Of a stretch of 64,000 nt of DNA, positions 4,590 to 46,420 are shown piece after piece. This DNA comes from Selaginella moellendorffii (taxonomy: Eukaryota > Plantae > Lycopodiophyta), in assembly GCF_000143415.4 (NCBI RefSeq), contig NW_003314340.1:379951-443950 (forward strand). Reading direction: 5' to 3'. The position numbers and the translations under genes are program-made. The notes below the pieces were generated by a model that saw nothing but the letters and a program-made list of their open reading frames with translations, did no database searches and was not told the DNA's origin. Numbering within the stretch: the stretch's first letter is position 1; each line of letters opens with the position of its first letter.

Positions 4590-4621
4590 TCATCCCCTCC
4601 TCTCGGAATAATGGAAGGCCG

Positions 4622-7600
4622 TCAGGGTTCTCTTGTAGATGGGCCGGGATCTGGAGGAACGTCAGGAGGAGGCATCGGTGGATCTGTAGACGGTATTAAT
4701 TGCTCCTGATCCCTCTGTATGAAGCGTTTTAACCGCTGCACATGCACAATCTCCGGAGGATTAGCCTGCTGAACGTCATGCCGAACCTCATAAACTTGTG
4801 GTCCAACTTGCCGCAACACCCGATACGGTCCTTTCCACTGCACAAGGAGCCCCTTAGATAAACCACGTACCGTAAGATGGGGAAAACGGACTAACACCAA
4901 ATCATCCACTTTGTACTCCGCTGGTGGACGATGATGGGAATTGTAGCGCCGTTGTTGTCCCACTTGTACGCGGCCTAAGTGTTCAGCAGACTCTGCTCGG
5001 ACAAGTGGAAGAATGCTTGTCAAATATTGATCCCATGACCTAGCATCAGGAGCTCGTGGCAATTGCGAAGGTAAACCTAGCTCTGTTGGTAATATTGGAT
5101 CATGACTATATAGAAGTTTATATGGTGAAGCACCAACAGAACTCTGCACCCCTATGACACCGAAGAGACGGCAAATAACCATCCCAATCCGAATGTTGAA
5201 AGTTCACATACTTCGCAATCATCCCTTTGAATGTTCGAACGAGCCGTTCCACCAGATCGTCTGATTGTGGATGATAAGCACTCGTAAAAGTGTGGCGTAT
5301 CCCCAACCGAGATGTCAAAACATGAAATACCTCAGCCATAAATGCAGGACCATTATCCGAAAGAATCCGTTCTGGACAAGAATGCTGGAACACCACTCGA
5401 TTGAGGAGGAAGTATCCAACAGCAGTTGCAGAGGCACTAGCAAGAGCACCAACTTCCACCCAACGAGTCAAGTAGTCAGAAGCAATAATAACATACTCAT
5501 TGCCAGTAGTCGATCGCAGAAAAGGTCCTATAAGATCAAATGCCACCAACTCAAACGGACGAGAAACTGCAATTGACTCCAACCGTCCTTCCGCAGCACA
5601 AGGGAGAGTATTACGAGCTTGGCACCAAACGCAGCTACGCACATACCGGATAATATCACGTTGCATCTCTGGCCAATAGAAAGATCTGCGCAACTTCTCG
5701 GTGACACGACGGTGTCCCATATGCCCACCTAGAATAGGAGAATCATGGTAGGCATGGAGAAACCGCGGAATAAACACCGAAGGCACCACCAGCCGTAAAT
5801 GAGCATCAGGATCCGTCCCCACAAAATAAAGAAGGCCATCTTCAAGGCGATATTGAGAATGTAAATGCCAAAAAGGCAAGTCATCAGCAAGTGATGCAGG
5901 ATTCTCAAACCCATCTCGAAGCCTTCGAATCCACGGCTCAATCTTTTGAGCCTCGCGAACCTCATCCAGAGAAGGTAGATCTTGCTCTACACCCTGTGGA
6001 CACTGAACGTCAAGGACAGCAACCGCCGACGGCACAGAATCCTCATCTAGAAAATCCACAGATGCTGGAACAACAGGTTTGTCAGAAACATGAGAAGTGA
6101 GTGGAGAAGGAAGAGGAGCTCGAGAAAGGGCATTAGCATCAGCCATAGAACTCCCTGGGCGATGAACAACATCGAAATCATATATCTGAAGCTTCAAAGC
6201 CCATCGAGCCGTACGACCAACCAGGTTCTTCCGCTTCAATAATGAAGTAACAGCAGCATGGTCACCTTCAAGTAACGTCCGAGAACCATGTAGATAGGCA
6301 TGAAGTTTCTCGAAACCCCAGACTGCTGCTAAACACTCCTTCTCCGTCGTGGAGTAGTTCATCTCCGCTGGTTGTAATGTACGGCTTATGTATGCAATGG
6401 GATGGCGCTGACCAGGCACACTCGAGCTCTCTTGCATCAACACACCTCCAAGACCAATGTCAGAAGCATCCACGCGCAAAATAAAAGGTCGAGTGTAGTC
6501 AGGATATGCCAAAACCGGAGGAGTCGTCAATAGCTCTTTGAGATTCACGAACGCCCGCTCACAATCGGGAGACCAGATGACAGATGACGTTGATGACTTC
6601 AGCAACGCTCGCAATGGTAAAGTGCGATCGGAAAGATGATCCACAAAACGACCGAGATACTGCACCTTACCCAAAAAGCGCTGCACATCATTCACACACT
6701 TCGGAGTAGGGAACTTTAGAACAGCCACAAGTTTGTCAGGATCAACTTGCAAACCCTCACGAGAAATACGGTACTCAAGATAAGTTGTGTCCTTGGACCC
6801 AAACACGCACTTCGACCACTTCAGCTTTAAACCAACGTCGCGTAGCCGATCCAACACTTTACAAACATCAAGAACATGCTCCTCCCACGTCCCCTCCGAG
6901 TGGATCAAGACATCATCAATGAAGTCAGCCGTCACCTCCGGCATATCGCAAAGAACCTCGTCCATCATTCGCTGAAAAGTTGCTGGAGCATTGTTCAAAC
7001 CAAACGGCATCACCAAAAACTCGTACAAACCAAATGGTGTACGAAAAGCAGTCTTAGGAATATCGTCTTCAGCCATCGGTACTTGCCAATACCCAGAAGC
7101 AAGATCTAGCTTGGTGAACCAACAACTTCGCCCCAGACGATCCAAGAGATCAGCAGTGTGAGGAAGAGGGTACACGTCCGGGATCATCACTTCATTTAAC
7201 GGACGATAGTCGATGCAGAAACGAATACTCCCATCAGGCTTCGTCACAAGATGAGGTTCACATGCCCAAGGACTCCGCGACTTCCGAATAACACCCTTCT
7301 CCAACATCTCCTTGACGTTTGCACGTAAAATCTTGATCTCCTTGGGTGACCGACGACGAACAGGAACCTTGATTGGACGAGCATCCCCGGTTGGAATGGG
7401 ATGACGTGTGGCAATCTTGGCCCCAGACGATAGGTCAAATTCAAAGAGATCAGAATACTCCTTCATGAGTTGGTCAACAGCTGCAACACAAAGATCATCG
7501 GAGGGATCGGAAAAGGGAAGAGCAGAACAAGATGGAAACACAAGAGGAAATAATGGGGGAACAAAAGTAATGGAAGCAGAGGTAGAAGTAGAGGGACGAA

Positions 7601-8102
7601 GAGGTACAGAAGTGAGAGGAATGGATGAAACATAAGGAAGTATGAGACAAGGGGGAAAAGCCTCAAAGTCACACTTGGCATGATTGTGCTGCAACCAATC
7701 CATACCAAGAATGAGGTCAAAAGCTTGACTCGGCACCACCCGCAACGACTGCAACTCAAGCTCGAGATCGCCCACACGCACAACCAGGTCCGCCTCATCT
7801 CGTGCACATGCATGTGTACGGCCGTTGCCATAAAGAATGAAAACTGGATCCGCCGCACGACGCAAGTGTAGACGACAATGTGTGGCAACAGGTCGAGCAA
7901 TAGAAGATAAACTCGAACCTGTATCAACCAACACGGAGAGAAGAATATGAGACCTCTTGTTATAAAAACGAGCTTGGAAAGTAAACACTGGATGAACCGG
8001 TGCCGAGTGAACCCCTTGATGATACTCCCGAAAGAAAGATGGAGGGGTCACTAACTTATTCGCGCAAGGTCCCTCCATTACTCGCGCGACTCCTCGTTTC
8101 CC
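4622..8102 (-). CDS. pol: pol (PR-RT-RNaseH-INT) of gypsy copy 1, in the -1 frame to gag; 8-nt deletion near 5160 breaks the integrase C-terminus
   Basis: LVDTGSS protease, KLDLASGYWQ and FIDDVLI RT, VDASDIGLG RNase H, HHCC zinc finger, SDNG integrase core, WKGPY motif in the shifted frame 4622-5182. Deletion seen against copy 2 (cggTATGCTTAtgtca). Confidence 0.93.
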
Positions 8103-9010
8103 GAATGCACCTTGGTATCCAAACCTTCCACCGCAGCAGCACCAACGGGACGTTGCTGACGCCAAGGTCTCCACCCAGGAAATGGAGGTCGCCAATCCGG
8201 AAAGCGCCGACAACGCCGATAAGTATGACCAACTTCATCACACGCCCAGCAACGAATGTCACGGCCACGACCACGTCCTTGCCCTTGTCCTTGGACTCGA
8301 GTAGCAGCAGCATCAACCTCCATGGGAACAGGACTATCACTCATAGGAAGTGGAGCTGAAGGACGTGTAGCAAGAAGTGGAAGAGGCGACGTCTCATAAC
8401 GTTGTGCCAAGCGAAGAGCATCGTCAAGAGTGGCAGGAGCAAGTGCATGCACAAGTCCGACAAGATCTTGACGAAGTGCTGGCCACAGCATTCCTAGCTT
8501 GATCCGCTCCGACATATTTGGCTCCGCACGAAGCAAAAGACTTCGGAAACAAACGCCAAATTGCATCACCGACTCAGATGGCCCTTGGCGAAGACGATGC
8601 AATTGTTGGAAGGCATCATCACAATTGTCGGCGTGTCCGAAGGCGCGTTTGAAGACGCCCGGAAGAACACTCCAATCGCCACGAGTAGCTGCGCTCAATC
8701 CATTGTACCACTGCAATGCCGTCCCTTGAAGACATGTGGGGAACTCACGCAAACGTCGAGCATCATCCCAAGAATGATATGTGGCAATCACCGTGAAGTG
8801 ATCGAACCAATGGTACACATCATCCCCAGGATTCCCACGAAAGAACTCCGGCCGAACGAGAGGATTGGCACCAAAAGCAGGAGGAGTTGTACCATGTGCC
8901 GTGAACGCCGCCATCAACTGAGTTTGGTTGTTCAATTGCAGGCACATAGCATCAAGCAATTGAACCAACTGCTGCTCTAGAGTCAAAGGAGGAGATTGCG
9001 GATCGGCCAT
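8078..9010 (-). CDS. gag: gag of gypsy copy 1, 310 aa, intact
   Basis: Capsid-like LQGTALQWY and LRQGPSESV, PVPMEVD motif, CCHC knuckle CWACDEVGHTYRRC. Confidence 0.93.
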   Translation of the reverse strand: MADPQSPPLTLEQQLVQLLDAMCLQLNNQTQLMAAFTAHGTTPPAFGANPLVRPEFFRGNPGDDVYHWFDHFTVIATYHSWDDARRLREFPTCLQGTALQWYNGLSAATRGDWSVLPGVFKRAFGHADNCDDAFQQLHRLRQGPSESVMQFGVCFRSLLLRAEPNMSERIKLGMLWPALRQDLVGLVHALAPATLDDALRLAQRYETSPLPLLATRPSAPLPMSDSPVPMEVDAAATRVQGQGQGRGRGRDIRCWACDEVGHTYRRCRRFPDWRPPFPGWRPWRQQRPVGAAAVEGLDTKVHSGNEESRE

Positions 9011-9226
9011 GAAAATGAATGAGAAAGAAAGAGCAAAAGAAGAGAAATGACAAAAAGCTGGAAAGAAATGGTAGATCTAGACAATGCAAAAAGCTAGATA
9101 TAAACCAAAATCCTGAAAGGAAAGAACAAAAGAAAGGAAATGGAAAAAGCTAGATCTAGACAATGCAAAAGCTAGATCTAAACCGAAATCCCAAATCCAA
9201 GCACTCCCCAGGGACAATCAAAGTTG

Positions 9227-9242
9227 CCCCTCACCTCCACCA
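9227..9242 (-). promoter_or_regulatory. Primer-binding site complementary to the tRNA-Ala 3' end
   Basis: TGGTGGAGGTGAGGGG (copy 2: TGGTGGAGATGAGGGG) one base after the 5' LTR. Plant tRNA-Ala ends ...CCCCGCATCTCCACCA. Confidence 0.8.
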
Positions 9243-9243
9243 A

Positions 9244-9417
9244 TGTGAGTGCATGGAATATGGAAAGGGAATACAAAAATGTGCATATCAATTAACCCAA
9301 AAACCCTAGCTTATATACAGGAGCGAGTGGTCCGGATTGAAACCAATCCGACGGCTACCAAAATCCACTACGCTAATATTAGTATACGGCATCGTAGCCG
9401 TACACTTGGCCCTCACA
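9244..9417 (-). repeat. 5' LTR of gypsy copy 1
   Basis: TG..CA termini, TATATAA box, followed by the PBS. Confidence 0.95.
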
Positions 9418-19599: not shown

Positions 19600-21752
19600 T
19601 TGCCCACAAGCAAAACTAATCTCCGAGCTTGGAAACAGGCGCAATGGCCTCTTCTCGCTATGGCTACATGCCGAGTCTTTCTTCTCGGCCTCGTCAATGT
19701 TGTGAAGAACGCTGGAAGATCCAGATCCTTGAGCTTGGTCACCATCTCTCGGACCTTTGCTAGGATCTCCCGGCTCTGGGGGTGGCGGCCAGCGTCTCCA
19801 GCCACGAAGCTATGCACGAGGCCGGAGTTATCATCCGACCACCATCTTCCATGCTCGGGCCTCGCCTCTCATCATCTCCACCTCGTTTTGCTCCTCCCAC
19901 ATCTCCAAGCTCGCGTAGATGTTCGCCATGAGAGTGTAGTGCGAGGCGTTTCTCCTGTCCAGCAGCATCAATGCGTTGAAAGCTCGTCTCCCGATCGCAG
20001 CGTTCTTCCACTTCCGGCTGGCCGCCAAGACTGTTCTCCAGGCCAGCACGTTGGCCTCGAAAGGCATCGTCTCCGTCACTCTCACTGCCGCCTCGAGCTC
20101 GCCTCCACGACCAAGTATGTCGATCAGGCAAATGTAGTGCTCCATCGCTGGAGCAACGCCGAATCTCGACTGCATGGACGCTAAGTAGCTCTTCCCCCGA
20201 TCGGTGAGACCTGCGTGGCTGCAAGCCGTGAGGATGGAGACGAAGGTGACGCCGTCGGGACGCAAGCCATCGTCGTGGATCATCCTCCAGACGCTCTGGA
20301 ACACGCTATCAGTGTCACCTTGGCGGCTGTATCCGGCGATGAGAGCGCTCCAGGTGACGAGCGTCCTGGCGGGGAGTGCGTCGAAGAGCTGCTCGGCCTC
20401 GACGATGCTGCCGCATTTGCAGTAGAGATCCACCAAGCAGTTTGCAAGGAGCTCCTGGCACTCGAGGCCACACTGAGAGGCGAGACCGTGGAGCTTCTTC
20501 CCGGACTTTAGCGAGCCGGAGCTTCCACAGGCCCTGAGCAGCGCGGAGAAGAACGGAGGATCGAGCAGAAGGAGCGTTTGATCCGAGGAGTGGATCATCC
20601 TGCCGAAGAATATCTCGAGTGCAACGTCCGCCTCGCCACTCTCAGCGTAGCCTTGCATGAGAGCCGTCCACGAGACCACGTCTGGAGGCTGCTTCATGCT
20701 CTCAAACGCTCGTCTGGCGTCCTCCATGCTTCCACACTTGGAGTACATGTCCACGAGCGAGCTGGCGACGAAGCTATCGTTGCAAAACCCAGCCTTGATC
20801 GCTCCAGCGTGAATTCTCATCCCCTTCTCCAGGTGGTCGATCTTCACAAGCTTCCCACCGATGTGATCTGTGGCCTCGTCTTTCGTGGCAAGAAGGCTGC
20901 AAGCTTTGAGAGCCGCCATGAAAACTCTCCCATCTGGGGAGCAGTGGCTTTCCTCGTCGCCGTCTTGGATCATCCGGAAGAAGAGATCCATCGCTAGCTT
21001 TGCGTCGCCACACTCGACGTAGCCGAGCAGCAGGGAAGTCCACGAAACCACGTCTCGAGCGGCCATCCTATCGAAAACCATCCGAGCGTCCAAGGAGCTG
21101 CCACACTTCGTATAGATGTCCACGAGAGCGTTGGTGATGAAAGCGTTGGAGTAGCAGCAGCGAAGCGTGGACACTGCCCGAGAGTGGATCTCCATCGCCG
21201 TGCTAAGCGCCCGGACCTTGACGAGCTTGCCATGGATTCCTTCCGGAGCTTCCCTCGCTGCCAAGCTCGAGCAGGCCTTGAGAGCCGCCACGAAAGCTCT
21301 CGAGTCCGGCGATGGTGTTGCGGAGCTCTCATCCTCCTCACTTCCATCGTCTTTTCTCATCCGGTGGAAGAGCTCCAGCGCGATCTCTCCCCGCCCAGCC
21401 TCGGCGTAGCCCAGCATGAGATTGACGAAGGAGGCGGCGTCGCGGCGGGGCATGGCGTCGAAAACCCTGTGAGCGTCGACGAGGCTGCCGCATTTGGCAT
21501 ACATGTAGATGAGAGCTCCGCCCACGCGAGTGGTGGAGCTGAAGAGCGCGCTGGCGATGGCGTCGCTGTGGAGCCTCTTGCCCCGCTCCAAATCCCTCGA
21601 CGCCGCGCAAGCCTTGAGCGCCGTGAGGAGCTCGCGAGCCGCGGGCCTGTAGCTGGCGATGGCATCGCTGTGGAAATCTCTCGCGAGTGAGCGCTCGGCG
21701 CGAGGGAATGCGGCAGAGAACTCAACTCCCAATCGTTTGGCCCAAAAATCAT
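19600..21752 (-). CDS. PLS-class PPR protein (main ORF 19831-21732) with E domain; E+ and DYW remnants out of frame; start context frameshifted
   Basis: Repeated MYAKCGS..DA..VFD.M..RDVVSW motifs and E-domain MPFEANVLAWRTVL. HSFVAGD..HPQSREI and SHSEK appear downstream in other frames. ATG at 21752 is out of frame by one T compared with the paralogue ATG at 45726. Confidence 0.88.
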
Positions 21753-21889: not shown

Positions 21890-22770
21890 TTATCGAACAA
21901 GGCTAGAAAATGCGCTGCCAATAGAGCCCTGGTACATCTCTGGACCCGTTCAGAGGCTTTGGTCGAGGCTCCAAAGTCCTCAGAATTCCCACTGGTACAT
22001 AAAATTTCTTGCAAGGCTCTTTTGATTGTTTGTTTTTTCCCATGTTGCAAATCTCCAGACTAGAGCATTCTCAAAGCACCTGGCAGAGAAAGTTTGCAGG
22101 ATTTCTCTCATCGGTCGAGGCTGGTGACGAGTATCTGCTGGAATCTATACTTTTGACAATGTAGAAAAACAGTGGTAAGTCAAGTCTTATGTTTGCTAGG
22201 AAGAAAGCTTAATTGGTGTTACTACAAGATCCCTGGCTACTGCAAAGAAGATTTCTATGGAGAGGAAGGTTGTTGTTGGCTACATTAGTGTCGAAGTACC
22301 TAGTTCATGATTTTAAATGGAAGTAACAGTTCCTTTGACAAACTTGGGCCAAAGGAAGAAGAAATTAAACACACTTAACATTTTCCCAGTGTTTTTTACT
22401 ACTCCTTAAGATCTAAGTGTTTCAAGTTGTAGAAGGACAAATCTTTCCAAGGATCTCCTCCAAATCATTTTAACGAATTGCTGGAAAGAGTAGTCATTAC
22501 AAATTTGAGCTCACAAGCTCAAAAGTCAGCAAAAGTCCATATACGGTGGCGCTAGCGAGTGAAGAGATCAAGATCATCAAGAGAGTGCTGCCACGATCCA
22601 TGGCTGGAATTGGAGATGCAAAACACCGGTGGTAAATTGGTTTAAAAGCTCTAGAAAAAGTTGACCTCGTGCATGCGGAGTTAGACTTTTCAAGATCGAA
22701 CTCAACCATGACTTTGAGACTTAAGATAGAATCTTGCAAGCACAGGTGTTCTTATGTTTCCATTCGAGGA
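21890..22770 (+). pseudogene. Duplicated fragment of the FHY/RFK 3' exons, introns and 3' flank
   Basis: aatgcgctgccaatagagccctggtacatctctggacccgt and following sequence match 50667 onward, with deletions; cacaggtgttcttatgtttccat matches 51628-51650. Confidence 0.85.
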
Positions 22771-23744: not shown

Positions 23745-24758
23745 ATGGGCCTCTAAAAATCATTATGGAAATCTTTTATGAATGAGCATTTGATGCAAAA
23801 AAAAGTTTTAGTGCAAAAAATCATAACTTAAGAGAAAAGTAAATCTTTAATGTCCCATTAACATATTTGTATAGGCACATATTTATTCTCCACAAATAAA
23901 GAATATCTAAATTTCAAGTGGGCTTTATTCTTACTTTGCTATCAGCTGCCACAACTCTTCTCTCCTCCCACTTGGCACAATAATGAGAAAATTGTTATAT
24001 CATTCATTAAAATGAAATTCATAGCAATAGTGTTATAAAATCATAATGTAAAGCTTGATAAGTGGGATATAAACCAAAATTGCATGATTCCAGTGTTTAG
24101 AGGCTACATTTTTCAAGTTTTTAGTATACATTGTTTTATTCTTGTAATGGTTGAACTTGGAATGCCTCTCATAAGCCTAGTAAACACATTTTTGCTAATA
24201 AAGGAAATATACTTGCAAAAGTTATTTTTAACAAATATGTAGAAGAATTTGGCCTCTTAGACATTGTGGAATGTAAATAAAAAATTCTTCTAATTTATAG
24301 TTTTTATTGGTTATTAAGCCAATGCTCTAACACCATTTTCTTTGTAGAGAAAATTGTGGATAGAATTTGCAAAAAGTTTATGTTAGCTAAATATAAGAAA
24401 TAGTGGGATAGAAGGAATCTAGAAAAGTAGTTTAACAAGAAACCTTTCTAAGTTGCAATGGCAATTGTGAAGGATTATGATTTAGAGCAATTTTTGTGGA
24501 TGTAATGCTAGTAAAACTTTTTATAGCTTTATTTTTTCTAAATTTTCTTATAGAAAAGCTTATTGCATATTCAAAGCATTTATTTACATATTAAAATCTT
24601 TTATGCTTGACTAAAACTCTTTTAATGATTGTGGCTAGGAAGAATCTAAGCATTCTCCACAAATATAAGTGTTCCATTTTGGATTGTACTTTCGAAATAA
24701 AAATAATTTTCTTATTCTTGTATGATTTAATGGCCCCCTTTGTCATGAAAGACTCTTC
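23745..24758 (+). pseudogene. Hypermutated AT-rich relic of PPR 5' end, promoter, LMW-PTP and FHY/RFK 5' half
   Basis: 24014-24118 aligns without gaps to 48205-48309. 24205-24290 matches 48417-48500, 24320-24760 matches 49740-50385, and 23745-23880 matches the PPR start region 21640-21805. Confidence 0.85.
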
Positions 24759-24844
24759 TGTAAGGAACTAACTCCCCAAGGTGTCGTACGCTAAAGGATC
24801 CTCGAAAGCATGACTGAAATGATAAAGAGTTCATCGGATGGGAC

Positions 24845-25103
24845 CAAGTCCGAGATCGTGTCCAAGACTGACTCTGAGACCGAGTTTAAGATAGAGTCCG
24901 AGATTGAGTCCGAGGCCGACTCCGAGACCAAGTTCGAAACTGAGTTTGAGACCGAGTCCGAGATCTGAGAATGGGTCTGAGACCGAGTTTGAGTTCGAGT
25001 TTGAGGTCGAGTCTAAGATTGGGTCCGAGGTCGGGTCCAAGACTAAGTCCGAAGTCAGGTCCGAGATCGAGTCCAAGATTGAGTTCGAGATCGAGTCCAA
25101 GTA
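24845..25103 (+). repeat. Degenerate hexamer array (TCCGAG/CCGAGT-like) inside the chromovirus 5' LTR
   Basis: Roughly 40 six-bp units such as gtccgagatcgagtccaagattgagttcgag; equivalent array at about 30163-30416 in the 3' LTR. Confidence 0.85.
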
Positions 25104-25272
25104 CTAATATGTGTCAAGGGGTGAAAGCCCAAAGCGTGCGTCTCCCAAGGGCGGGGGGGGGGGGGGGGGGGGGTTTAAATAATTTTCCCAAGTCATTTAG
25201 GCTTTTAGTTTGGTTCCGGGGGCCCAAAAAACCGGCTTGAACGAAAGTTTCCGGGTTGGCTCCCCACTTAAT

Positions 25273-25904
25273 NNNNNNNNNNNNNNNNNNNNNNNNNNNN
25301 NNNNNNNNNNNNNNNNNNNNNNNNNNNNNNNNNNNNNNNNNNNNNNNNNNNNNNNNNNNNNNNNNNNNNNNNNNNNNNNNNNNNNNNNNNNNNNNNNNNN
25401 NNNNNNNNNNNNNNNNNNNNNNNNNNNNNNNNNNNNNNNNNNNNNNNNNNNNNNNNNNNNNNNNNNNNNNNNNNNNNNNNNNNNNNNNNNNNNNNNNNNN
25501 NNNNNNNNNNNNNNNNNNNNNNNNNNNNNNNNNNNNNNNNNNNNNNNNNNNNNNNNNNNNNNNNNNNNNNNNNNNNNNNNNNNNNNNNNNNNNNNNNNNN
25601 NNNNNNNNNNNNNNNNNNNNNNNNNNNNNNNNNNNNNNNNNNNNNNNNNNNNNNNNNNNNNNNNNNNNNNNNNNNNNNNNNNNNNNNNNNNNNNNNNNNN
25701 NNNNNNNNNNNNNNNNNNNNNNNNNNNNNNNNNNNNNNNNNNNNNNNNNNNNNNNNNNNNNNNNNNNNNNNNNNNNNNNNNNNNNNNNNNNNNNNNNNNN
25801 NNNNNNNNNNNNNNNNNNNNNNNNNNNNNNNNNNNNNNNNNNNNNNNNNNNNNNNNNNNNNNNNNNNNNNNNNNNNNNNNNNNNNNNNNNNNNNNNNNNN
25901 NNNN
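25273..25904. other. Assembly gap (632 N)
   Basis: Run of n; the sequence just before it, including a poly-G run, may be low quality. Confidence 1.
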
Positions 25905-28900
25905 AAAGAGGAGTCTGGTGGTGAGGTTTGGTCGTCCAAGGCTCGATTGGATGTTCTAGAAAAGCAGACTATAACCATTTAAGAATATGTTAATGGATTT
26001 ATGGCAAAGAGGATACTTATCACAGACATAGGGGATACAGATGCGTTCCATGCCTTCATATCAGGCTTGCAAACTTGGGCTCGCGGTGAGGTGATGTGTT
26101 GGATCCCGACCAACTACAAGGAAGCATTGGATGCGGCCATCAAAGTGCATTTCAACGATAACCTGCAAAAGGGGAATACGACGAGGTCGAGGTCTACGTT
26201 TAGCAAAGGGGCCAAACCAAGAGGAACATATAGCAAAGGGAAATTCAAGAAGAGTTTCTCTAAGAATGAGTCCTTAGGGTTCCGGAAAGGTAGATCCAGT
26301 GGCTAGCAATCAAGTATGTGGGGGAGTTAAGCAAAAAGAGACAAACCCAGGGAATGTCCCTACCCGAAAAAGGCCAGAGCCAATATGGCCATTAAGTCGA
26401 GTGAAATCCAAACTAAGGTATGTGATCCAATCCTTAGCTCAAAGTTACTCATTACATGAGCAACTTTGGTAGAGAGTCGTTCACGACATTTACTAACCCT
26501 TCGAGGGAAGTTCAAAGGTAGCTTTGTTAAGATGCTTATTGACATAGGTGCTTTGGATAATTTTGTGGCTATAGACATAGTCTAGCAAGCCAAACTAACG
26601 ATGTAGCGGCTGGAACCAAGGACGATAGAGTTTGTTCAAGGTAGCCAAAGCACCGATGAGATACTTCGACAAACAAAAGTTGAAGTAGGGACATGGAAAG
26701 TAGACATGGATTTCACTGTGTTGGACATAACGGGATTTAACGTAATCTTTGGAATAGACTGGTTCAATCAGTTCGTAATAGCCCTGCATGGACAAGGGAG
26801 GAACCTTGTGGTACTAGTGAATGCCTGGGGAGAACGATCTAGGGTGGAGGCCTAAGATCTAAAGGTAGGGCAATGTAAGGCCAAAGACTCTTACTTAAAC
26901 TTAGTGTCCACGAGAGGAAAACTCACTAAAGGAACCAAGGCAACATTTTTATGCTTACTCTCGGTGAAGAGTGACAAAAAGACAGGAACGAAAGAAGTAC
27001 CTTTAGTGATCCAGCGGATGTTAGCCCAATTCTAGGATACCATGCCAGAGGAGCCACCGACAGAGTTGCCCCCCACCCGACCGATAAAACACAAGATTGA
27101 GCTGGTCGAGGGTGCTAAGGTGGTGGTTCGTCCCCCCTATCATTTGAGAGAAAAATAACTCAAGGAGCTCAAGTGCCAACTAGAAGAGTTAGTTGACAAA
27201 GGGTATGTTAGGTTGAGCGAGTCGTTGTATGGGGTGCCAGTGTTATTTGTGAAAAAGAAAGATAAATCTATGCGCATGTGCATAGACTACCAGTTGCTTA
27301 ACAAGTATACAAAGAAGAACAAGTACCCTTTGCCAAGGATTGAGGACCTGTTCAATAGGTTGGGAAAGGCAAAATATTTCTCGAGGATTGACCTAAGGTC
27401 AGGATACTACCAGATCAGGGTAGCAGAGGAAGATATCAAGAAGACAACCTGTCAAACAAAGTATGGGAGCTTTGAGTTTCTAGTGATGCCCTTTGGGTTG
27501 TGCAATGCGTCAGTAACGTTTTCGGCACTGATGAACCATATCTTTATACCCTATCTGGATCAATTCATTGTCGTTTATATTGATGACATCCTGATCTATA
27601 ACAAGATGCTAGAGGAACATGTCAAACACTTGACAAAGGTGTTTGAGAAACTAAGGGAACACAAACTATATGCTAAAGAGAGCAAATGCGACTTTGCTCA
27701 ACAATAGGTAAAGTTTCTTGGGCATGTGGTGGGCCAAGACGGGCTCAAAGTGGACCCTAAGAAGGTCCAAGCGATCCAAGAATGGGAGCGACCATCGAAT
27801 GTACATGAGTTGAGGGCATTCATGGGGCTATGCAACTACTACCGAAAGTTTATCAGACACTATTCGAGAGTACCCTTACCCTTAACGAACCAAATGGGTA
27901 AAGGGAAGATGGTATGAACAGCAGAATGCGAGGCGGCATTTGTCCACCTCAAAGGGAAGTTGAGGAAGACACTTATGTTAGTGTTATTTGACTTTGGTAA
28001 GGACTTTGAGGTAGAAATGGATGCTTCAGACTTTGCATTGGGCTCAGTTTTGAAGCAAGACAACCATCCAGTGGTGTTCTTTTTGAAGAAGTTGAACAAG
28101 GCTCAGCAAAAATGGCCTGCCCACGAGAAGGAATTATTTGCGGTGGTCAAGGCACTCAAGGAGTGGCGACACTACCTTGGGAGGCACTTTAAAGTTTACA
28201 CAGATAATGTGGCAACAAAACACTTCTTGTCACAACCTGATCTAAGAGGGAAATAAAGTCGGTGGGCCAATGCTTTGGTTGAGTTTGATTGTAAGATTCT
28301 GTATAAACCTAAGAAGAGCAATATCGTGGCAAATGCTCTAAGTCAAAAAACAAGCTTGAAGTTAGCGATATCTAGCGTGATAGCAACCTTTTGGTCTAGC
28401 ACAAGAAGTGTTGTTGAAGAACCAAGAGGCGCGAGAAGCTCACCAGAGAGGTGAGTTGCCAACATAAGAGAAAACAGGTTATGTGGAACGCAATGGACTT
28501 ATCTATTATAAATAAACGAAAGTGTATATTCCTAAAGGGGAATTAAGGAAGGTAGCCTTAGAAGAGTGTTATGATGGACCTCTTGCGGGATACGGCAGAG
28601 TGCTCAAGATGATGGGCTTACTCAAGTGGAAGTATCACTGGCCAGATATGGCTAATGACGTCCAAGACTTTGTAAAGTCATGTCCAACATGTCAGCAAGT
28701 CAAAGCCATGACTAAGGCTAGTGGGGGCTTGTTACAAAGCATCCCAATTCCAGATCAGCCATGGAAATGTCTTACAATGGACTTCATCACGGGACTCCCC
28801 CCAAGCGAGGGTTCGATGCGATATTCGTGGTGGTGGACCGATTTTCAAAGATGGCACATTTCATACCCACCACCACGGAAGTGGATGCGGAAGGTGTAGC

Positions 28901-30506
28901 AAAGCTATTCTTCGAACAAGTGGTTCGAGTGCGGGGAAGGCCAGAAGAGATCATCTCAGACCGAGATAAGATCCTCAAGGATGAGTCTATGGGAAGTCAT
29001 CAATGGGTGAGCTATTGAAGGTCCTGTGGAACTCGGCGTGGCCGAGTATCATGGAGAGTTACCTACAGTGGAGGCATTCACGGCAGAAAGACTCAACATT
29101 TGGAATCTGGGCTCAACAAAAGCAAACCAAGTACGCGAACCAGAAGCGTCGGGATGTAGAGTTCCAAGCTAGGGAGAAGGTGTGGCTGAACACCAAGAAC
29201 CTCAGGCTACCAAGTGGGATCAGTCAGAAGTTGACCCAAAGGTAAAAATGCATGTATTCTTGTAAATGAATTGATCTTGAGTTCCTTAAGCAAGTTCGCA
29301 GGGCCTTACAAGATTGAGGTATGAATCGGTAAAGTGGCTTACTGTCTTCGACTTCCTCGAGAGATGGGGAAGATGCACCTAGTGTTCCACGTGAACTTAC
29401 TTAAGCTGTACTTTGAGGATCTGCTTCGCAAGGACTAAGTAAGACCTTTACATGAGGTTATCCAAGGGGAAGAGGAATACGAAGTCGAGGCCATCCTCAA
29501 TGCGCACAAGAGCAAGCGACAAGGACGTGAGGTGAGAGAGTTCCATATGAAGTGGAAAGGATTTCCACACTGCGAAGCAACATGGGAACCGGAGGAGAAC
29601 CTAGTGAACGCATAAGATCTAATGGAGGAATTTCTGCAAGACAAAACTTTATGTACTTATACAAAGTTTAATTAAAGTATCAATTTGTGAAGTTGAGCAA
29701 TGGCATATGTTGGGACTCGAAGGCATGCCGAAGGTAAGCTAATTAGCATGGGTTAGCTAGGTCGACCAGGTGTAAGCACTATGCCCGACTCCCCACGGGG
29801 ATGTCCAATCCGTAGACGTATTCTACGGAGGTTGGGTTCGAGTCCCAACCCCCTAGTAAAGCAAGGCTGGGTTCAAGTCCCGACCCCATACTAGGGCATG
29901 GTGAGGTGAGGGGTATAGGGACATCTATATTCCATTGTCATGGGCTCTTGGCCGGGGAGGCTAACATAGGCACACTGCTAAGTGGGGGGATGCCCCCAGA
30001 GACATGGTCAACAAGTTGTAGGGTTTAAAAAGAGACGTTCGATGTCGGCATCGAACTTCTTCTATGGGTGGTGGAGTTGTAAAGAACCAACTCCCTGAGG
30101 TGTTATAGGCTAAAGGATCCCCGAAAGCATGACCAAAATAATAAAGAGTTCATCAGATGGGACTGAGTCCGAGATCGAATCCAAGACCGACTTTGAGACC
30201 GAGTTCGAAATAGAGTCCGAGATCAAGTCCGAAGTTCGAGACCGAGTTCGAAACCGAGTTCAAGACTGAGTCCGAGATCCGAGAATGGGTTCAAGACCGA
30301 GTCCGAGTTCGAGTCCGAGGTCGAGTCCGAGATCGGGTCCGAGGTCGAGTCCGAGATTTATTTCGAGACCAAGTCCGAAGTCAGGTCCAAAATCGAGTCT
30401 GAGACTGAGTCTGAGTACTAATACAGGTCAAGGGGTGAAAGCCCAAAGTGTGCGTCTCCCCGGGGGGGCTGCAGGGGTTCCAAAAGTATAGTAGGGATAG
30501 TGAAGT

Positions 30507-31130
30507 AATTTTTGTAGATGTAGTGCTAGTAAAACTTTTTATAGCTTTATTTTTTATAAATTTTCTTATAGAAAAGCTTATTGCATATTCAAATCATTTA
30601 TTTATATATTAAAATCTTTTACGCTTGACTGAAACTCTTTTAATGATTGTGGGGGATGAGATCCAAAAACCTAAGCATTCTCCACAAATATAAGTGCTCC
30701 ATTTTTTATTGTACTTTCAAAATAAAAATAATTTTCTTATTCTTTTATGATTTAATGGCCCACTTTGTCATCAAAGACTCTCCCTAAGTTTAAACTTCCA
30801 AGTTAATCCTTAACATTTTACATTGATAATTCGATATTATAAAATAATATTTTATCTTTATTAGCTTTCAAACCAATATTATAAGATGGGGACTTAACCG
30901 TCTCAACTAAGTCACTGTAAGTCATGTCATCAAATAGACTTATGTTTGTTAAAAAGAATGCTCAGTTAAACATTGATTATTGCATAAATCTTAAAAAGAG
31001 TAATTATGGGTTTTTTTTTTGTCTAGGCTAATTTCTAAGAGGATAAAATTCTATATTAATAAATCACAATCATCAACAAATGTGAATTACTTAGGAAAGA
31101 AAATAAACACTCTTGCCATTTTCTTTCTAG
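30507..31130 (+). pseudogene. Continuation of the hypermutated FHY/RFK relic; the first ~275 bp duplicate 24489-24758
   Basis: gtcatcaaagactctccctaagtttaaacttccaagttaatcc matches 50368-50410; ctgtaagtcatgtcatca matches about 50604; gtctaggctaatttct matches about 51153; aaacactcttgccattttct matches 51361. Confidence 0.8.
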
Positions 31131-32894
31131 AATTAAGTGAAGGTCTAGAATAATTATATATTGTTGTTTTAGGACTAGAAACTATAACAACTTTTTGTAA
31201 ATATTGTAGGATGGTTTTTGTTGCTTCTCTTTTTTTTAGTGTCATTATTTTATGAGGATGTGGTTCTTTTAATCCAATTTGAAAAACAATATGACATGGA
31301 AAACTTATCCCAGTTTTACATGCTTATATTACAGTTATATATTTTCTTTTATATGGAAAATTGGAGTGTAAAATATACCCTTTATGGCCACTGTCAAGAT
31401 CACCATACCTATGATTGCATCTGCAGCCATGATTTATATTACCATGCCTCCCATAATGATTGCAACCATCACAAATTGGAACTATATACTAACTCGAGTG
31501 GGATTTACTTCTTTATCATTTTAAAAATTGTAACTTACGGCTATAAGCAAATGCATAATTTTCATTGTGGAAATGATTTTGGCAAGATTATAACTCAAGG
31601 TAAATGTAAATATGGCAAAGGTTAGTGTAATAAAATTATAACTCAAGGTTATGGGGTAGGGCATTAAATTAGCCATCATCCTAAATTCATAATGTTCAAA
31701 AATGGATCTTCTCAAGTTTGTGAGAACCTAGTCATTGATTATATATAGGAAAAAAATATCTAACTCAGTGAGGGAAGTTTATGTTAAATGATAGGATGCT
31801 AAAAAAATTTATACTAGGAAGTTTAATAGATCTTTTCTATGTAGTGATAATGTAAAAAATAAATATCTCCTCAAACAAAATACTTCCTCCAACTTATCAA
31901 GAATTGTAAAATCCATACCCATCTCCACAAAATTTTAAATGAAATTGAAAAGTTGGTGAGTGCAACATATAAGGATGAAACATGTTTCATTTCCTTTGAA
32001 GACATTATTGACAAAGTGGTAAAACTTCATCTAGTGCTAAAGTGATTTTAGTTATTGATTTTGAATGTCTACTTTAATACCTTTAATTAGAATTTGAATA
32101 ATATATGGGGTTGTTACAACAAACTTTATTTTGCATAGACAATGGTAAATCGAGCTCACTTAAAAGTAAAGGAGTTAGAATCAAATTAAGAGTTTTACAT
32201 AAAAGTGTTAGCTTTTATAAAAGATATTAAGTTATACAGTTAAAATAAAGGTTTAAAAGAAAGGATTAACATCCATTTATCAAAGGTTGTAATTACTTAT
32301 TTACTTTTCTAAGTTAGAGTCAAAAACATTAAATACCATAGTGGGATTATTAAATCAATTAAAGTTGTAAAAAAGGTTTAGCTCATCTCTAAACCTTTTA
32401 AACTTTCACCTACATTCCACAATTATGCTTATGCTCAAGAGGCACTTCTCGATCTCAAGAGAGGTGATGGAGAGCAAAATAACCAAAGACTTCCATACAA
32501 GCTTTCAAAGTTTATACTTTGGAAGTAGCAAATGATTTAAATGTTTTCTTCTCTAATACTTTACTTCTTATATCACAGTAGTTAAATAAATGATAATGGT
32601 AAAAATGTATGTCACTATTCATAGTAAATTCCTTTTTGACTTCTTCTTTCATTTATCATTTTGAGATAACACTTTAAGATTGTTTGTGCAACTGAAATGA
32701 ATCTTAGCTTTATTTATGGATGTAAGGATAATTTTTGCTATGGTAATGATTTTCGTAACTAGTGTGACAAGATTGCAACTAAGGGTAGATATGAGTGTGG
32801 CAAAGGTTGGTGGGGTAGGATTATAGCTCAAGGTGGTGCGGAAGGGCATGAAGTTGACCACCATCATAATTTTTTTATGTTCAAGGATAGATTT

Positions 32895-33018
32895 TTCAAT
32901 TTTGGAATTCCAAATATATAATAGAGATATATCATATATCATTTACACAAACTGGCATTCAATTTTGGAATTCCAAATATATAATAGAGATATATTATAT
33001 ATCATTTACACAAACTGG
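32895..33018. repeat. 63-bp tandem duplication, two copies
   Basis: ttcaattttggaattccaaatatataatagagatatat.atatatcatttacacaaactgg at 32895 and 32958. Confidence 0.9.

Positions 33019-33846: not shown

Positions 33847-33902
<56 letters not shown>
33847..33902. repeat. Compound (AT)n(GT)n microsatellite abutting gypsy copy 2
   Basis: Directly visible; the GT run merges into the LTR's initial TGTG. Confidence 0.95.
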
Positions 33903-33903
<1 letters not shown>

Positions 33904-36900
33904 AGGGCCAAGTGTACGGCTACGATGCCGTATACTAATATTAGCGTAGTGGATTTTGGTAGCCGTCGGATTGGTTTCAATCCGGACCACTCGCTCCTGT
34001 ATATAAGCTAGGGTTTTTGAATTAATTGATATGCACATTTCTGTATTCCCTTTCCATATTCCATGCATTCACATTGGTGGAGATGAGGGGCACCTTTGAT
34101 TGTCCCTGGGGAGTGCTTGGATTTGGGATTTCGGTTTAGATCTAGCTTTTGCATTGTCTAGATCTAGCTTTTTCCATTTCCTTTCTTTTGTTCTTTCCTT
34201 TCAGGATTTTGGTTTAGATCTAGCTTTTTGCATTGTCTAGATCTACCATTTCTTTCTAGCTTTTTGTCATTTCTCTTCTTTTGCTCTTTCTTTCTCATTC
34301 ATTTTCATGGCCGATCCGCAATCTCCTCCTTTGACTCTAGAGCAGCAGTTGGTTCAATTGCTTGATGCTATGCACCTGCAATTGAACAACCAAACTCAGT
34401 TGATGGCGGCGTTCACGGCACATGGTACAACTCCTCCTGATTTTGGTGCCAATCCTCGCGTTCGGCCGGAGTTCTTTCGTGGGAATCCTGGGGATGATGT
34501 GTACCATTGGTTCGATCACTTTACGGTGATTGCCACATATCATTCTTGGGATGATGCTCGGCGTTTGCATGAGTTCCCCACATGTCTTCAAGGGACGGCA
34601 TTGCAGTGGTACAATGGATTGAGCGCAGCTACTCGTGGCGATTGGAGTGTTCTTCCGGACGTCTTCAAACGCGCCTTCGGACACGCCGACGATTGTGATG
34701 ATGCATTCCAACAATTGCATCGTCTTCGCCAAGGGCCATCTGAGTCGGTGATGCAATTTGGCATTCGTTTCTGAAGTCTTTTGCTTCGTGCGGAGCCAAA
34801 TATGTCGGAGCGGATCAAGCTAGGAATGCTGTGGCCAGCACTTCGTCAAGATCTTGTCGGACTTGTGCATGCACTTGCTCCTGCCACTCTTGACGATGCT
34901 CTTTGCTTGGCACAACGTTATGAGACGTCGCCTCTTCCACTTCTTGCTACACGTCCTTCAGCTCCAGTTCCTATGAGTGATGGTCCTGTTCCCATGGAGG
35001 TTGATGCTGCTGCTACTCGAGTCCAAGGACAAGGGCGAGGACGTGGTCGTGGCCGTGACATTCGTTGCTGGGCGTGTGATGAAGTTGGTCATACTTATCG
35101 GCGTTGTCGGCGCTTTCCGGATTGGCGACCTCCATTTCCTGGGTGGAGACCTTGGCGTCAGCAACGTCCCGTTGGTGCTGCTGCGGTGGAAGGTTTGGAT
35201 ACCGAGGTGCATTTGGGAAACGAGGAGTCGCGCGAGTAATGGAGGGACCTTGCGCGAATAAGTTAGTGACCCCTCCATCTTTCTTTCGGGAGTATCATCA
35301 AGGGGTTCACTCGGCACCGGTTCATCCAGTGTTTACTTTCCAAGCTCGTTTTTATAACAAGAGGTCTCCTATTCTTCTCTCCGTGTTGGTTGATACAGGT
35401 TCGAGTTTATCTTCTATTGCTCGACCTGTTGCCACACGTTGTCGTCTACACTTGCGTCGTGCGGCGGATCCAGTTTTCATTCTTTATGGCAACGGCCGTA
35501 CACATGCATGTGCACAAGATGAGGCGGACCTGGTTGTGCGTGTGGGTGATCTCGAGCTTGAGTTGCAGTCGTTGCGGGTGGTGCCGAGTCAAGCTTTTGA
35601 CCTCATTCTTGGTATGGATTGGTTGCAGCACAATCATGCCAAGTGTGACTTTGAGGCTTTTCCCCCTTGTCTCATACTTCCTTATGTTTCATCCATTCCT
35701 CTCACTTCTGTACCTCTTCGTCCCTCTACTTCTACCTCTGCTTCCATTACTTTTGTTCCCCCATTATTTCCTCTTGTGTTTCCATCTTGTTCTGCTCTTC
35801 CCTTTTCCGATCCCTCCGATGATCTTTGTGTTGCAGCTGTTGACCAGCTCATGAAGGAGTATTCTGATCTCTTTGAATTTGACCTATCGTCTGGGGCCAA
35901 GATTGCCACACGTTATCCCATTCCAACCGGGGATGCTCGTCCAATCAAGGTTCCTATTCGTCGTCGGTCACCCAAGGAGATCAAGATTTTACGTGCAAAC
36001 GTCAAGGAGATGTTGGAGAAGGGTGTTATTCGGAAGTCGCGGAGTCCTTGGGCATGTGAACCTCATCTTGTGACGAAGCTTGATGGGAGTATTCGTTTCT
36101 GCATCGACTATCGTCCGTTAAATGAAGTGACGATCCCGGACGTGTACCCTCTTCCTCACACTGCTGATCTCTTGGATCGTCTGGGGCGAAGTCGTTGGTT
36201 CACCAAGCTAGATCTTGCTTCTGGGTATTGGCAAGTACCGATGGCTGAAGACGATATTCCTAAGACTGCTTTTCGTACACCATTTGGTTTGTACGAGTTT
36301 TTGGTGATGCCGTTTGGTTTGAACAATGCTCCAGCAACTTTTCAGCGAATGATGGACGAGGTTCTTTGCGATATGCCGGAGGTGACGGCTGACTTCATTG
36401 ATGATGTCTTGATCCACTCGGAGGGGACATGGGAGGAGCATGTTCGTGATGTTTGTAAAGTGTTGGATCGGCTACGCGACGTTGGTTTAAAGCTGAAGCG
36501 GTCGAAGTGCGTGTTTGGGTGCAAGGACACAACTTATCTTGGGTACCGTATTTCTCGTGAGGGTTTGCAAGTTGATCCTGACAAACTTGTGGCTGTTCTA
36601 AAGTTCCCTACTCCGAAGTGTGTGAATGATGTGCAACGCTTTTTGGGTAAGGTGCAGTATCTCGGTCGTTTTGTGGATCATCTTTCCGATTGCACTTTAC
36701 CATTGCGAGCGTTGCTGAAGTCATCAACGTCATCTTTCATCTGGTCTCCCGATTGTGAGCGGGCGTTCGTGAATCTCAAAGAGCTATTGACGACTCTTCC
36801 GGTTTTGGCATATCCTGACTACACTCGACCTTTTATTTTGCGCGTGGATGCTTCTGACATTGGTCTTGGAGGTGTGTTGATGCAAGAGAGCTCGAGTGTG

Positions 36901-38907
36901 CCTGGTCAGCGCCATCCTATTGCATATATAAGCCGTACATTACAACCAGCGGAGATGAACTACTCCACGACGGAGAAGGAGTGTTTAGCAGCAGTCTGGG
37001 GTTTCGAGAAACTTCATGCCTATCTACATGGTTCTCGGACGTTACTTGAAGGTGACCATGCTGCTGTTACTTCATTATTGAAGCGGAAGAACCTGGTTGG
37101 TCGTACGGCTCGATGGGCTTTGAAGCTTCAGATATATGATTTCGATGTTGTTCATCGCCCAGGGAGTTCTATGGCTGATGCTGATGCCCTTTCTCGAGCT
37201 CCTCTTCCTTCTCCACTCACTTCTCATGTTTCTGACGAACCTGTTGTTCCAGCATCTGTGGATTTTCTAGATGAGGATTCTGTGCCGTCGGCGGTTGCTG
37301 TCCTTGACGTTCAGTGTCCACAGGGCGTAGAGCAAGATCTACCTTCTCTGGATGAGGTTCGCGAGGCTCAAAAGATTGAGCCGTGGATTCGAAGGCTTCG
37401 AGATGGGTTTGAGAATCCTGCATCACTTGCTGATGACTTGCCTTTTCGGCATTTACATTCTCAATATCGCCTTGAAGATGGCCTTCTTTATTTTGTGGGG
37501 ACGGATCCTGATGCTCATTTACGGCTGGTGGTGCCTTCGGTTTATTCCGCGGTTTTTCCATGCCTACCATGATTCTCCTATTCTAGGTGGGCATATGGGA
37601 CACCGTCGTGTCACCGAGAAGTTGCGCAGATCTTTCTATTGGCCAGAGATGCAACGTGATATTATCCGGTATGTGCGTAGCTGCGTTTGGTGCCAAGCTC
37701 GTAATACTCCCCCTTGTGCTGCGGAAGGACGGTTGGAGTCAATTGCAGTTTCTCGTCCGTTTGAGTTGGTGGCGTTTGATCTTATGGGACCTTTTCCGCG
37801 ATCGACTACTGGCAATGAGTATGTTATTATTGCTTCTGACTACTTGACTCGTTGGGTGGAAGTTGGTGCTCTTGCCAGTGCCTCTGCAACTGCTGTTGGA
37901 TACTTCCTCCTCAATCGAGTGGTGTTCCAGCATTCTTGTCCAGAACGGATTCTTTCGGATAATGGTCCTGCATTTATGGCTGAGGTATTTCATGTTTTGA
38001 CATCTCGGTTGGGGATACGCCACACTTTTATGAGTGCTTATCATCCACAATCAGACGGTCTGGTGGAACGGCTCGTTCGGACATTCAAAGGGATGATTGC
38101 GAAGTATGTGAACTTTCAACATTCGGATTGGGATGGTTATTTGCCGTCTCTTCGGTATGCTTATGTCACAGGGGTGCAGAGTTCTGTTGGTTCTTCACCA
38201 TATAAACTTCTATATGGTCATGATCCAATATTACCAACAGAGCTAGGTTTACCTTCGCGATTGCCACGAGCTCTTAATGCTAGGTCATGGGATCAATATT
38301 TGACAAGCATTCTTCCACTTGTCCGAGCAGAGTCTGCTGAACACTTAGGCCGCGTACAAGTGGGACAACAACGGCGCTACAATTCCCATCATCGTCCACC
38401 AGCGGAGTACAAAGTGGATGATTTGGTGTTAGTCCGTTTTCCCCATCTTACGGTACGTGGTTTATCTAAGGGGCTCCTTGCGTAGTGGAAAGGACCGTAT
38501 CGGGTGTTGCGGCAAGTTGGACCACAAGTTTATGAGGTTCGGCATGACGTTCAGCAGGCTGATCCTCCGGAGATTGTGCATGTGCAACGGTTAAAACGCT
38601 TCATACAGAGGGATCAGGAGCAGTTAATACCGTCTACAGATCCACCGATGCCTCCTCCTGACGTTCCTCCAGATCCCGGCCCATCTACAAGAGAACCCTG
38701 ACGGCCTTCCATTATTCCGAGAGGAGGGGATGATGTGAGGGCCAAGTGTACGGCTACGATGCCGTATACTAATATTAGCATAGTGGATTTTGGTAGCCGT
38801 CGGATTGGTTTCAATCCGGACCACTCGCTCCTATATATAAGCTAGGGTTTTTGGGTTAATTGATATGCACATTTCTGTATTCCCTTTCCATATTCCATGC
38901 ACTCACA
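33900..38907 (+). mobile_element. Ty3/gypsy LTR retrotransposon, copy 2 (same family as 4416-9417, opposite orientation), defective
   Basis: 174-bp LTRs at 33900-34073 and 38734-38907 with 5 differences. PBS 34075-34090, PPT 38719-38733. gag 34307-35239 has a premature TGA at 34772; pol has a 2-nt deletion near 37540 and a TAG at 38483. No clear TSD. Confidence 0.97.
35215..35278 (+). promoter_or_regulatory. Predicted -1 programmed ribosomal frameshift signal (slippery heptamer plus H-type pseudoknot); identical copy at 8039-8102 on the minus strand
   Basis: G GGA AAC in the gag frame, 6-nt spacer, S1 TCGCGCGAG/CTTGCGCGA, S2 ATGGAGGG/CCCTCCAT; pol is in the -1 frame. Confidence 0.85.
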
Positions 38908-45726: not shown

Positions 45727-45825
45727 AACCTAAGAGAGAGGCGAATCTTTTAAGGTCCAAGAGCATATTCGTATAAATCGTAGAATATCCTTATTCTCCA
45801 CTCGTCAAACTTTTCCAAGTCCTTA

Positions 45826-46420
45826 TCGAATGGATTCTAAACAGGGATAGAAATTCTTGGAAGGCGCTCTAATCTAATCATCTGTTTCCTCCCATGCAGC
45901 GAATCTCCCGACTGGAGCATTCTCTAAGCAGCTGGCAGAGAAAGTTTGCGGGATTTCCCTAGGGCTGGGCCGAGGCTTGTTTGGGATGGTGACGAACGTC
46001 GGCTGGAATCCATACTTTTGACAATGCAGAGAAAACAGTGGTAGGTCGACTCTTGTGTTTGCTAGGAAGAAAGCTCAATTAGTACCACTACAGGAACCCT
46101 GGGCATTGCAAGGAAGATTTCTATGGAGAGGAACTCTAGTGCCGAAAGTACCTAGTTCACGATGAAATGATTTTAAATGGAAATAACGGTTGTTTTGACG
46201 AATCACACACTCTTAGCATTTTCTTGCGTGTTTTTTACTGCTCCTTAAGATCCACAAGTTTAAAGCTCTAGCAGAACAAAGCGACCTCCTCCAATCGTTT
46301 CAACGAATCGCTGGAAAGAGTAGTCGCTGAGCTTTTCCAACGAAAGTCAATACAAAGTCAAACATGACAATGACTTTGAGACTTAACGTAGAATTTCGCG
46401 ATTCTTATGTTTCCATTCGA
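45826..46420 (+). pseudogene. Another duplicated fragment of the FHY/RFK 3' region
   Basis: tcgaatggattct..aacagggatag, gcagcgaatctcccgactggagcattct and gacaatgcagagaaaacagtggta match 50640-51450 with deletions. Confidence 0.85.

Follow-up and report, generated by a model that had tools for sequence, protein, structure and literature searches.

Introduction

Repeat-induced point mutation (RIP) mutates all copies of a duplication and targets linked duplicates that share high identity over several hundred base pairs. Enzymes of the APOBEC/AID type prefer a particular 5′ base (TC, CC or WRC) and leave strand-coordinated clusters, and ultraviolet (UV) mutagenesis falls on dipyrimidines. We compared these and related systems with an AT-rich relic of duplicated genes in Selaginella moellendorffii. 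The relic lies in a 64,000-nucleotide stretch of scaffold GL377644.1, hereafter the window (window position + 379,950 = scaffold position). Proteins encoded in the window are identical to S. moellendorffii proteins. Like the products of APOBEC/AID-type and UV mutagenesis, it carries C>T changes outside CpG.

The hallmark of RIP is mutation of repeats in a CpA context (PMC4165359). The products of RID-dependent RIP in Neurospora crassa resemble the Selaginella relic in their dense, one-way C:G>T:A change, their stop codons and their AT-richness (PMC4165359). The relic differs from them in having no CpA preference and a negative composite RIP index, in that only one copy is affected while near-identical linked duplicates are spared, and in its gradual build-up. 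In decay of the ‘methylation induced premeiotically’ (MIP) type, or of the kind seen in Tuber melanosporum, cytosines are first methylated and later deaminate spontaneously, the two steps being uncoupled (PMC4165359). Such decay likewise enriches heavily methylated repeats in C>T changes but leaves no RIP signature. Unlike this fungal decay, the relic has contributions from the plant CHG and CHH contexts (H is A, C or T), and there is no evidence that homology triggers methylation.

In Arabidopsis mutation-accumulation and NanoSeq data, non-genic cytosines that are methylated have higher mutation rates in every context (PMC8145854, PMC12262721), and GC loss through deamination has a plant precedent in Welwitschia (PMC8275611). 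The relic shares with these cases a both-strand C>T/G>A change that ranks CG ~ CHG > CHH, is confined to DNA of the transposable element (TE) type, accumulates with age and ends near 28% GC. Unlike them, it allows a base-by-base measurement, with intact genes of 47–55% GC as the reference. Welwitschia also has high CHH methylation, whereas in Selaginella CHH sites mutate even though CHH methylation is reported missing from shoots. The Selaginella decay is real and larger than first reported, and most likely adds one more case to the methylation-linked decay already known, rather than being RIP.

A four-gene block has lost cytosines directionally

We identified a relic of a four-gene block (PPR 5′ end, LMW-PTP, FHY and a 358-aa gene) at 23.76–32.9 kb of the window (Table 1). 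Relic tiles were aligned with a transition-tolerant, direction-neutral matrix, with shuffled sequences as the control. Core-relic tiles score 100–380, versus 31–54 for shuffles. The initial annotation recognized the AT-rich DNA at 23.7–24.8 and 30.5–31.1 kb as a copy of a block comprising the PPR start, its promoter, LMW-PTP and FHY, and the homology map agrees. The block extends further than was noted, however: its right end lies at ~32,900 rather than 31.1 kb, and relics of the 358-aa gene had been missed. The duplicate had also been drawn as 23745–31130; its flanking pieces hold, but 24759–30472 is an old Gypsy long terminal repeat (LTR) element.

The initial annotation rested on a hand alignment of 105 nucleotides (24014–24118 versus 48205–48309), which we reproduced exactly. 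The 34 differences comprise 19 G>A, 10 C>T, 3 G>T, 1 C>A and 1 A>T. GC content falls from 61% to 30% and CpG count from 11 to 0. By context, the 29 transitions fall at 14 CG, 7 CHG and 8 CHH sites.

The same pattern holds across 2,049 pooled aligned bases of relic and intact references. C:G>T:A transitions account for 471 of the 616 differences, affecting 44.6% of G/C sites (471/1057). T>C/A>G changes affect 3.4% of A/T sites (34/992), and transversions stand at 5.4%. The frequency of C>T depends strongly on context (p=1e-14): 61% in CG (132/218), 58% in CHG (125/216) and 34% in CHH (214/623). Few symmetric sites survive (2 of 106 CpGs and 4 of 81 CWGs, where W is A or T). CpGs have become TA in 35 cases, TG in 28 and CA in 27; about a third are thus now TA, which implies that CpG hits are successive. 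Loss is ranked as plant methylation contexts are (CG, CHG > CHH) and is scattered over both strands with no neighbour motif.

Two observations assign the loss to the relic. First, three-copy polarisation of the PPR 5′ end and promoter places 24 C>T changes on the relic branch and 1 on each of the two intact copies. Second, the relic open reading frame (ORF) of the 358-aa gene has 15 new stops in 306 codons. The context tables and polarisation together bear out the earlier description of the change as directional, cytosine-specific, present on both strands, partly outside CpG and limited to one copy.

Retroelements of the same genome share the spectrum

We used Gypsy retroelements as a yardstick, counting only copy-to-copy differences, without a consensus. 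A young pair in the window has C>T frequencies of 5.2% (CG), 5.0% (CHG) and 1.2% (CHH), a ratio of about 4:4:1, and all 8 polarised singleton changes in its LTRs are C>T/G>A. An older copy of this family on GL377702.1 reaches 0.25, 0.25 and 0.12. The transition/transversion ratio (Ts/Tv) is 5.9 for the young pair and 10.5 for an old LTR pair; gene alleles have ratios of 1.2–1.5. The ratio of CHH C>T to transversions is much the same in the relic (7.8) and the old GL377702.1 copy (7.3; p=0.67), and the relic is indistinguishable from the young pair as well (p=0.84).

We also ran the young-Gypsy rates on the intact references in a simulation with time as the single fitted parameter, an assumed T>C rate and a transversion rate taken from 11 events. 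At 35–40 time units, it gives 0.58–0.60 for CG, 0.57–0.58 for CHG, 0.32–0.36 for CHH and 0.07–0.08 for transversions, against observed values of 0.61, 0.58, 0.34 and 0.054. Context decay alone does not account for the CHH changes, as a low CHH rate simulates 8–13% rather than 34%. The relic spectrum is the TE spectrum of the same genome scaled by age, and the decay is general to TE domains rather than special to gene duplicates.

These comparisons bear on the earlier proposal of unusually strong mutagenesis, which was to be judged against the C>T ratio of ordinary old methylated repeats in other plants. Within this genome, the relic largely behaves as such repeats do. For other plants the agreement is approximate only (Arabidopsis, ~5.5): our literature search found no cross-species table of LTR Ts/Tv, and Jedlicka 2020 gives no transversion data.

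Damage depends on chromosomal position

C>T frequency varies along the window, from 10% (45.8 kb) through 18% (21.9 kb) and 28% (22.7 kb) to 36–48% over 23.76–32.9 kb. The initial annotation described FHY sister duplicates at 21.9 and 45.8 kb as only mildly changed. Polarisation separates them: the 21.9-kb sister, at the domain edge, is directionally biased, and the 45.8-kb sister, between genes, is unbiased (Table 1). The 21.9-kb sister matches the relic in transversion distance (6.4%) but has far fewer C>T changes, which indicates a higher cytosine mutation rate in the relic and not just greater age.

Gene-embedded duplicates are spared. Linked IFRD duplicates lying 2.6 kb apart (97.8% identity over 1.4 kb) and a truncated PPR copy at 44.8 kb (95% over 1 kb) each show ~1% symmetric change. 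Because gene-embedded duplicates of similar age or higher identity are spared and the domain-edge copy is intermediate, position rather than homology is the likely trigger.

Several observations concern the surroundings of the domain. A low-copy repeat at its left edge (22979–23600) has 3–4x single-copy depth in another accession and is a candidate for the original silencing trigger. In the euchromatic duplicates (38.9–47.9 kb and the second-haplotype loci L002–L004), C>G is the commonest transversion (27/65), and CG transitions occur at 4.7x the transversion rate, though genes are reported unmethylated.

Probable methylation-linked decay in a silenced domain

We consider it probable that the relic arose by slow deamination of 5-methylcytosine (5mC) in a duplicate within a TE-type silenced domain. 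An old segmental duplicate (PPR 5′ end, LMW-PTP, FHY, downstream DNA and the 358-aa gene) would have joined a methylated domain of ~10 kb, silenced in the manner of TEs. No longer under selection, the duplicate would long have decayed by both-strand C>T changes and small deletions. Symmetric CG and CHG sites, the targets of MET1- and CMT-type enzymes, would have decayed first and now be saturated, with the remaining cytosines following at about one quarter of that rate. Chromatin position, not sequence homology, would be the trigger, and the Gypsy element would have arrived late, after most of the damage.

Selaginella methylates TEs and not genes (PMC6073778) and has a CMT (PMC5410703). From this we infer past or present methylation of the domain. 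5mC deamination is the presumed chemistry, and the possible causes of the CHH part are discussed below. The initial annotation had named 5mC deamination as an alternative, and it fits best. That methylated, silenced plant DNA drifts to AT is most likely a mechanism already known.

Several points weigh against this explanation. First, CHH C>T per transversion is about 6-fold higher in the relic (7.8) than in euchromatic duplicates (1.3; p=5e-10), yet CHH methylation and 24-nt small interfering RNAs are reported missing from S. moellendorffii aerial tissue (PMC5569507). Second, CHH mutability is independent of distance to a CG or CHG site; a neighbour effect was sought and none was found (35/34/33% by distance). 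Third, a search for terminal inverted repeats (TIRs) flanking the domain, which might have pointed to the silencing trigger, found only short, chance-level arms. Finally, the Gypsy element within the relic is younger than most of the decay.

Two candidates, one for the gene fragments and one for their silencing, were rejected. Gene capture by a Pack-MULE or other TIR element lacks the flanking inverted repeat, though heavy decay could have erased one. The inserted Gypsy is unlikely as the initial trigger, as 24 of 32 C>T changes are common to the flanking pieces and the element is still 45% GC.

Possible sources of the CHH excess

The CHH part of 5mC decay may reflect strong CHH methylation of TE domains in an unprofiled stage (meristem, sporangium, gametophyte or sperm), recorded by the relic. 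This refinement is compatible with methylation-linked decay, and we hold it tentatively, as a serious possibility that falls short of probable. Relative to GC-neutral transversions, CHH C>T is 19.6 in the relic and 2.1 in euchromatin (~9-fold), whereas C>A is raised only ~3-fold, and the excess is also present in Gypsy copies. By analogy, Marchantia sperm gain non-CG methylation (DNMT3b/CMTa), with TE methylation rising from 27% to 72% (bioRxiv 2021.02.12.428880), and a comparable gain might occur in Selaginella. The Marchantia sperm methylation reaches genes, however, and in the Selaginella window genes are spared. The subcontext preference within CHH at the +2 base is also weak and not significant (CWA 41%, CHC 29%; p=0.12).

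Alternatively, the CHH part could be a plain AT-biased plant spectrum (C>U at unmethylated cytosines, and G>T) that goes unopposed in non-recombining or poorly repaired heterochromatin. Euchromatin would then be the unusual compartment, with gene conversion, repair and selection holding its GC content high. We regard this as rather unlikely, though several observations are consistent with it. In the pooled relic, C>A (5.7%) is much commoner than T>G (0.7%), an imbalance present in all contexts. In the euchromatic control of polarised duplicates, CHH C>T equals T>C, but this control has just 27 CHH changes and includes some coding sequence. The relic may also be hemizygous, as it is absent beside the haplotype-2 PPR gene and is barely covered by another accession's reads. 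The Arabidopsis genome-wide C>T/transversion ratio of ~5.5 (1.01e-8 / ~1.85e-9, computed from PMC8145854) is near the relic's 7.8, but takes in methylated CG and CHG sites. A further difficulty is that a uniform GC-conversion bias would not raise CHH C>T ~3x more than C>A, as is seen.

Enzymatic mutagenesis and RIP

An enzyme acting on cytosines in silenced chromatin, either by methyltransferase-coupled deamination or as a DNA cytidine deaminase, would be an analogue of RIP steered by chromatin instead of homology. It would account for strong, near context-free CHH C>T restricted to TE-type domains in a species without reported shoot CHH methylation. The details of the spectrum make such an enzyme improbable. 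CHH sites show no motif, either by 5′ base (A 35%, C 34%, G 36%, T 33%; p=0.91) or by +1 base (CA 34%, CC 31%, CT 38%; p=0.28). There are no strand-coordinated tracts in the relic (same-strand successive hits 0.446 versus 0.457 expected). Accumulation was gradual, the C>T changes being accompanied by 36 alignment gaps and ~5% transversions, and the CG/CHG ranking matches known plant methyltransferases. Were such an enzyme nevertheless to exist, chromatin-directed conversion of C to T in all contexts, independent of CHH methylation, would complete the destruction of TEs and silenced gene copies, and might be part of the reason why the Selaginella genome is small and compartmentalised. Mutagenesis of the APOBEC/AID type or by UV was rejected on the absence of a 5′ base preference and of strand-coordinated clusters.

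The initial annotation went further and proposed a RIP-like mutagenesis, triggered by repeats, that destroys selected duplicate genes. We do not uphold this proposal, and true RIP, in which homology of linked duplicates triggers C>T mutagenesis, is very improbable here. The direction and density of C>T/G>A do resemble those of RIP relics, and the relic lies ~24 kb from its intact partner. The CpA bias of RIP is absent, however, and the relic's indices (substrate 1.30–1.65, product 0.88–0.92) give a negative composite. The partner copy is untouched, as the 24:1:1 polarisation indicates, and hits show no strand coordination. Selection could mask hits in functional copies, yet the truncated PPR copy is spared too, as are the IFRD duplicates, and TEs of differing age show graded amounts of change.

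It is equally hard to credit that the intact copies gained GC or that the pattern is an alignment or assembly artefact: the unbridged gap in the region and a 280-nt duplication without a target-site duplication (TSD) make a scaffold mis-join possible, but polarisation and the new stops place the loss on the relic, and the spectrum is unchanged under transition-neutral scoring with the haplotype-2 reference (CG 0.61, CHG 0.57, CHH 0.32) and on each side of the gap.

The Gypsy insertion and the assembly gap

The two FHY pieces that surround the old Gypsy element have 24 C>T changes in common and 8 private ones. As 24 of the 32 are common to both pieces, most of the damage is older than the insertion; the Gypsy element arrived late, and the 280-nt piece was duplicated late. 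This piece, the first ~280 nt of the second FHY relic (30501–30783), duplicates 24483–24758 at 90% identity on the other side of the element. No TSD was found between the right LTR and the left flank. Together with LTRs only 80% alike, this arrangement is what one would expect if two separately placed insertions had recombined, or if the scaffold had joined two copies at the gap.

A single element is plausible, since the left LTR matches the right one and the right one adjoins the internal domain without a break. The intact pol of the window recovered the element's pol remnant by tblastn (34% identity, E 2e-74); a search for a gag homologue found nothing. One search of the public contigs listed returned no contig bridging the gap. 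The ~110 nt before the gap fall in a bin with zero depth in all runs, and their letters resemble low-quality read-through after poly-G. C>T stands at 36–48% left of the gap alone and 41–46% right of it alone; since both sides give the same result, conclusions about the spectrum are independent of the join. In the LTRs of this element (24830–25110 and 30150–30420), short degenerate GC-rich repeats form an array in which many CpGs persist and whose repeat number varies among contigs.

Other features of the window and the second haplotype

The second haplotype is represented by GL377595.1 (loci L002–L004). It differs strongly in structure from 19.7–52 kb of the window: PPR/F-box/IFRD gene order is different, and L002 has three IFRD copies where the window has two. 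The PPR ORF adjoining the domain is 97.6% identical between haplotypes. Haplotype 2 has two intronless, GC-rich genes encoding 272 and 358 aa (L004 7409–8227 and 8645–9754); the latter is present within the window solely as a relic. Neither protein has a Pfam match, Atlas matches score below 0.9 and are uninformative, and the exact sequences have no entry in the protein collection searched. Of six additional loci, five proved gene-dense and yielded no further relic pairs.

Three side observations were made. A short AT-rich promoter motif is common to the PPR upstream region and the F-box/LMW-PTP intergenic region (21740–21860, 45700–45800 and 48014–48067). Young Gypsy copy 1 is flanked by a 4-nt direct repeat, GATT. 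An AT-rich inverted repeat of ~225 nt (14884–15106 and 15554–15781, 80% identical) is possibly a decayed miniature inverted-repeat transposable element or DNA transposon.

Table 1. Coordinates of the relic, its reference genes and the control elements in the window.
Feature	Position	Strand	Evidence and remarks
Young Gypsy copy 1, TE control	4416..9417	-	98.3% to copy 2; 65 transitions, 11 transversions
Intact PPR (E-motif) ORF adjoining domain, unmutated	19831..21732	-	ORF; haplotype-2 comparison
FHY 3′ sister at domain edge, mild directional decay	21896..22495	+	18% C>T at 6.4% transversions; polarised 16 C>T vs 2 T>C
PPR gene 5′ end and promoter relic	23759..23860	-	Aligns 45637–45800 and 21664–21850
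LMW-PTP promoter and first exons relic	23862..24291	+	Aligns 48014–48500; 94/217 G/C sites C>T
FHY (HAD + riboflavin kinase) 5′ half relic, many deletions	24314..24758	+	Aligns 49732–50384
Left LTR, old high-copy Gypsy	24759..25160	+	80% identity to 30078–30472; 63 transitions vs 6 transversions; thousands of contigs map
Assembly gap, unbridged	25273..25904	.	No listed public contig spans it; the two sides may not be continuous
Old Gypsy internal domain; pol remnant 27093–28854; purine tract before right LTR	25905..30077	+	tblastn
Right LTR, TG...CA	30078..30472	+	Contiguous with internal domain
FHY relic, second piece	30501..30844	+	FHY homology (both FHY pieces together: 49732–50446)
FHY-downstream DNA relic	31198..31300	+	Aligns haplotype 2 L003 6088–6205; 18/43 C>T
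Intronless 358-aa gene relic, family unassigned	31555..32686	+	Intact on haplotype 2, L004 8645–9754; 266/580 G/C sites C>T; T>C 16/507
Second, partial relic of 358-aa gene 5′ end	32688..32904	+	51/125 C>T
Young Gypsy copy 2, TE control, in TA/TG microsatellite at right edge of AT-rich domain	33900..38907	+	Pair with copy 1
FHY 3′ sister between genes, control, no directional decay	45801..46325	+	Polarised 4 C>T vs 8 T>C
Intact LMW-PTP gene, reference copy	48089..48863	+	Annotation; Pfam LMWPc PF01451; L001 9052–9826
Intact FHY gene, reference copy	49474..51281	+	Annotation; PF00702/PF13419/PF01687 (HAD+Flavokinase); L001 6634–8441

Implications

Our search, which reached few subscription journals, found no paper describing such decay in Selaginella. 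The value of the relic lies in clean, context-resolved rates measured against intact references, an advantage that comes from the high GC content and lack of methylation of Selaginella genes. Unrecognised dead genes make up part of the AT-rich intergenic DNA, and ages of LTRs or pseudogenes taken from total divergence are inflated in the Selaginella genome. The CHH excess predicts either CHH methylation in a reproductive or meristem stage that is unseen in shoots, or a strong difference in repair or conversion between the compartments of this genome.

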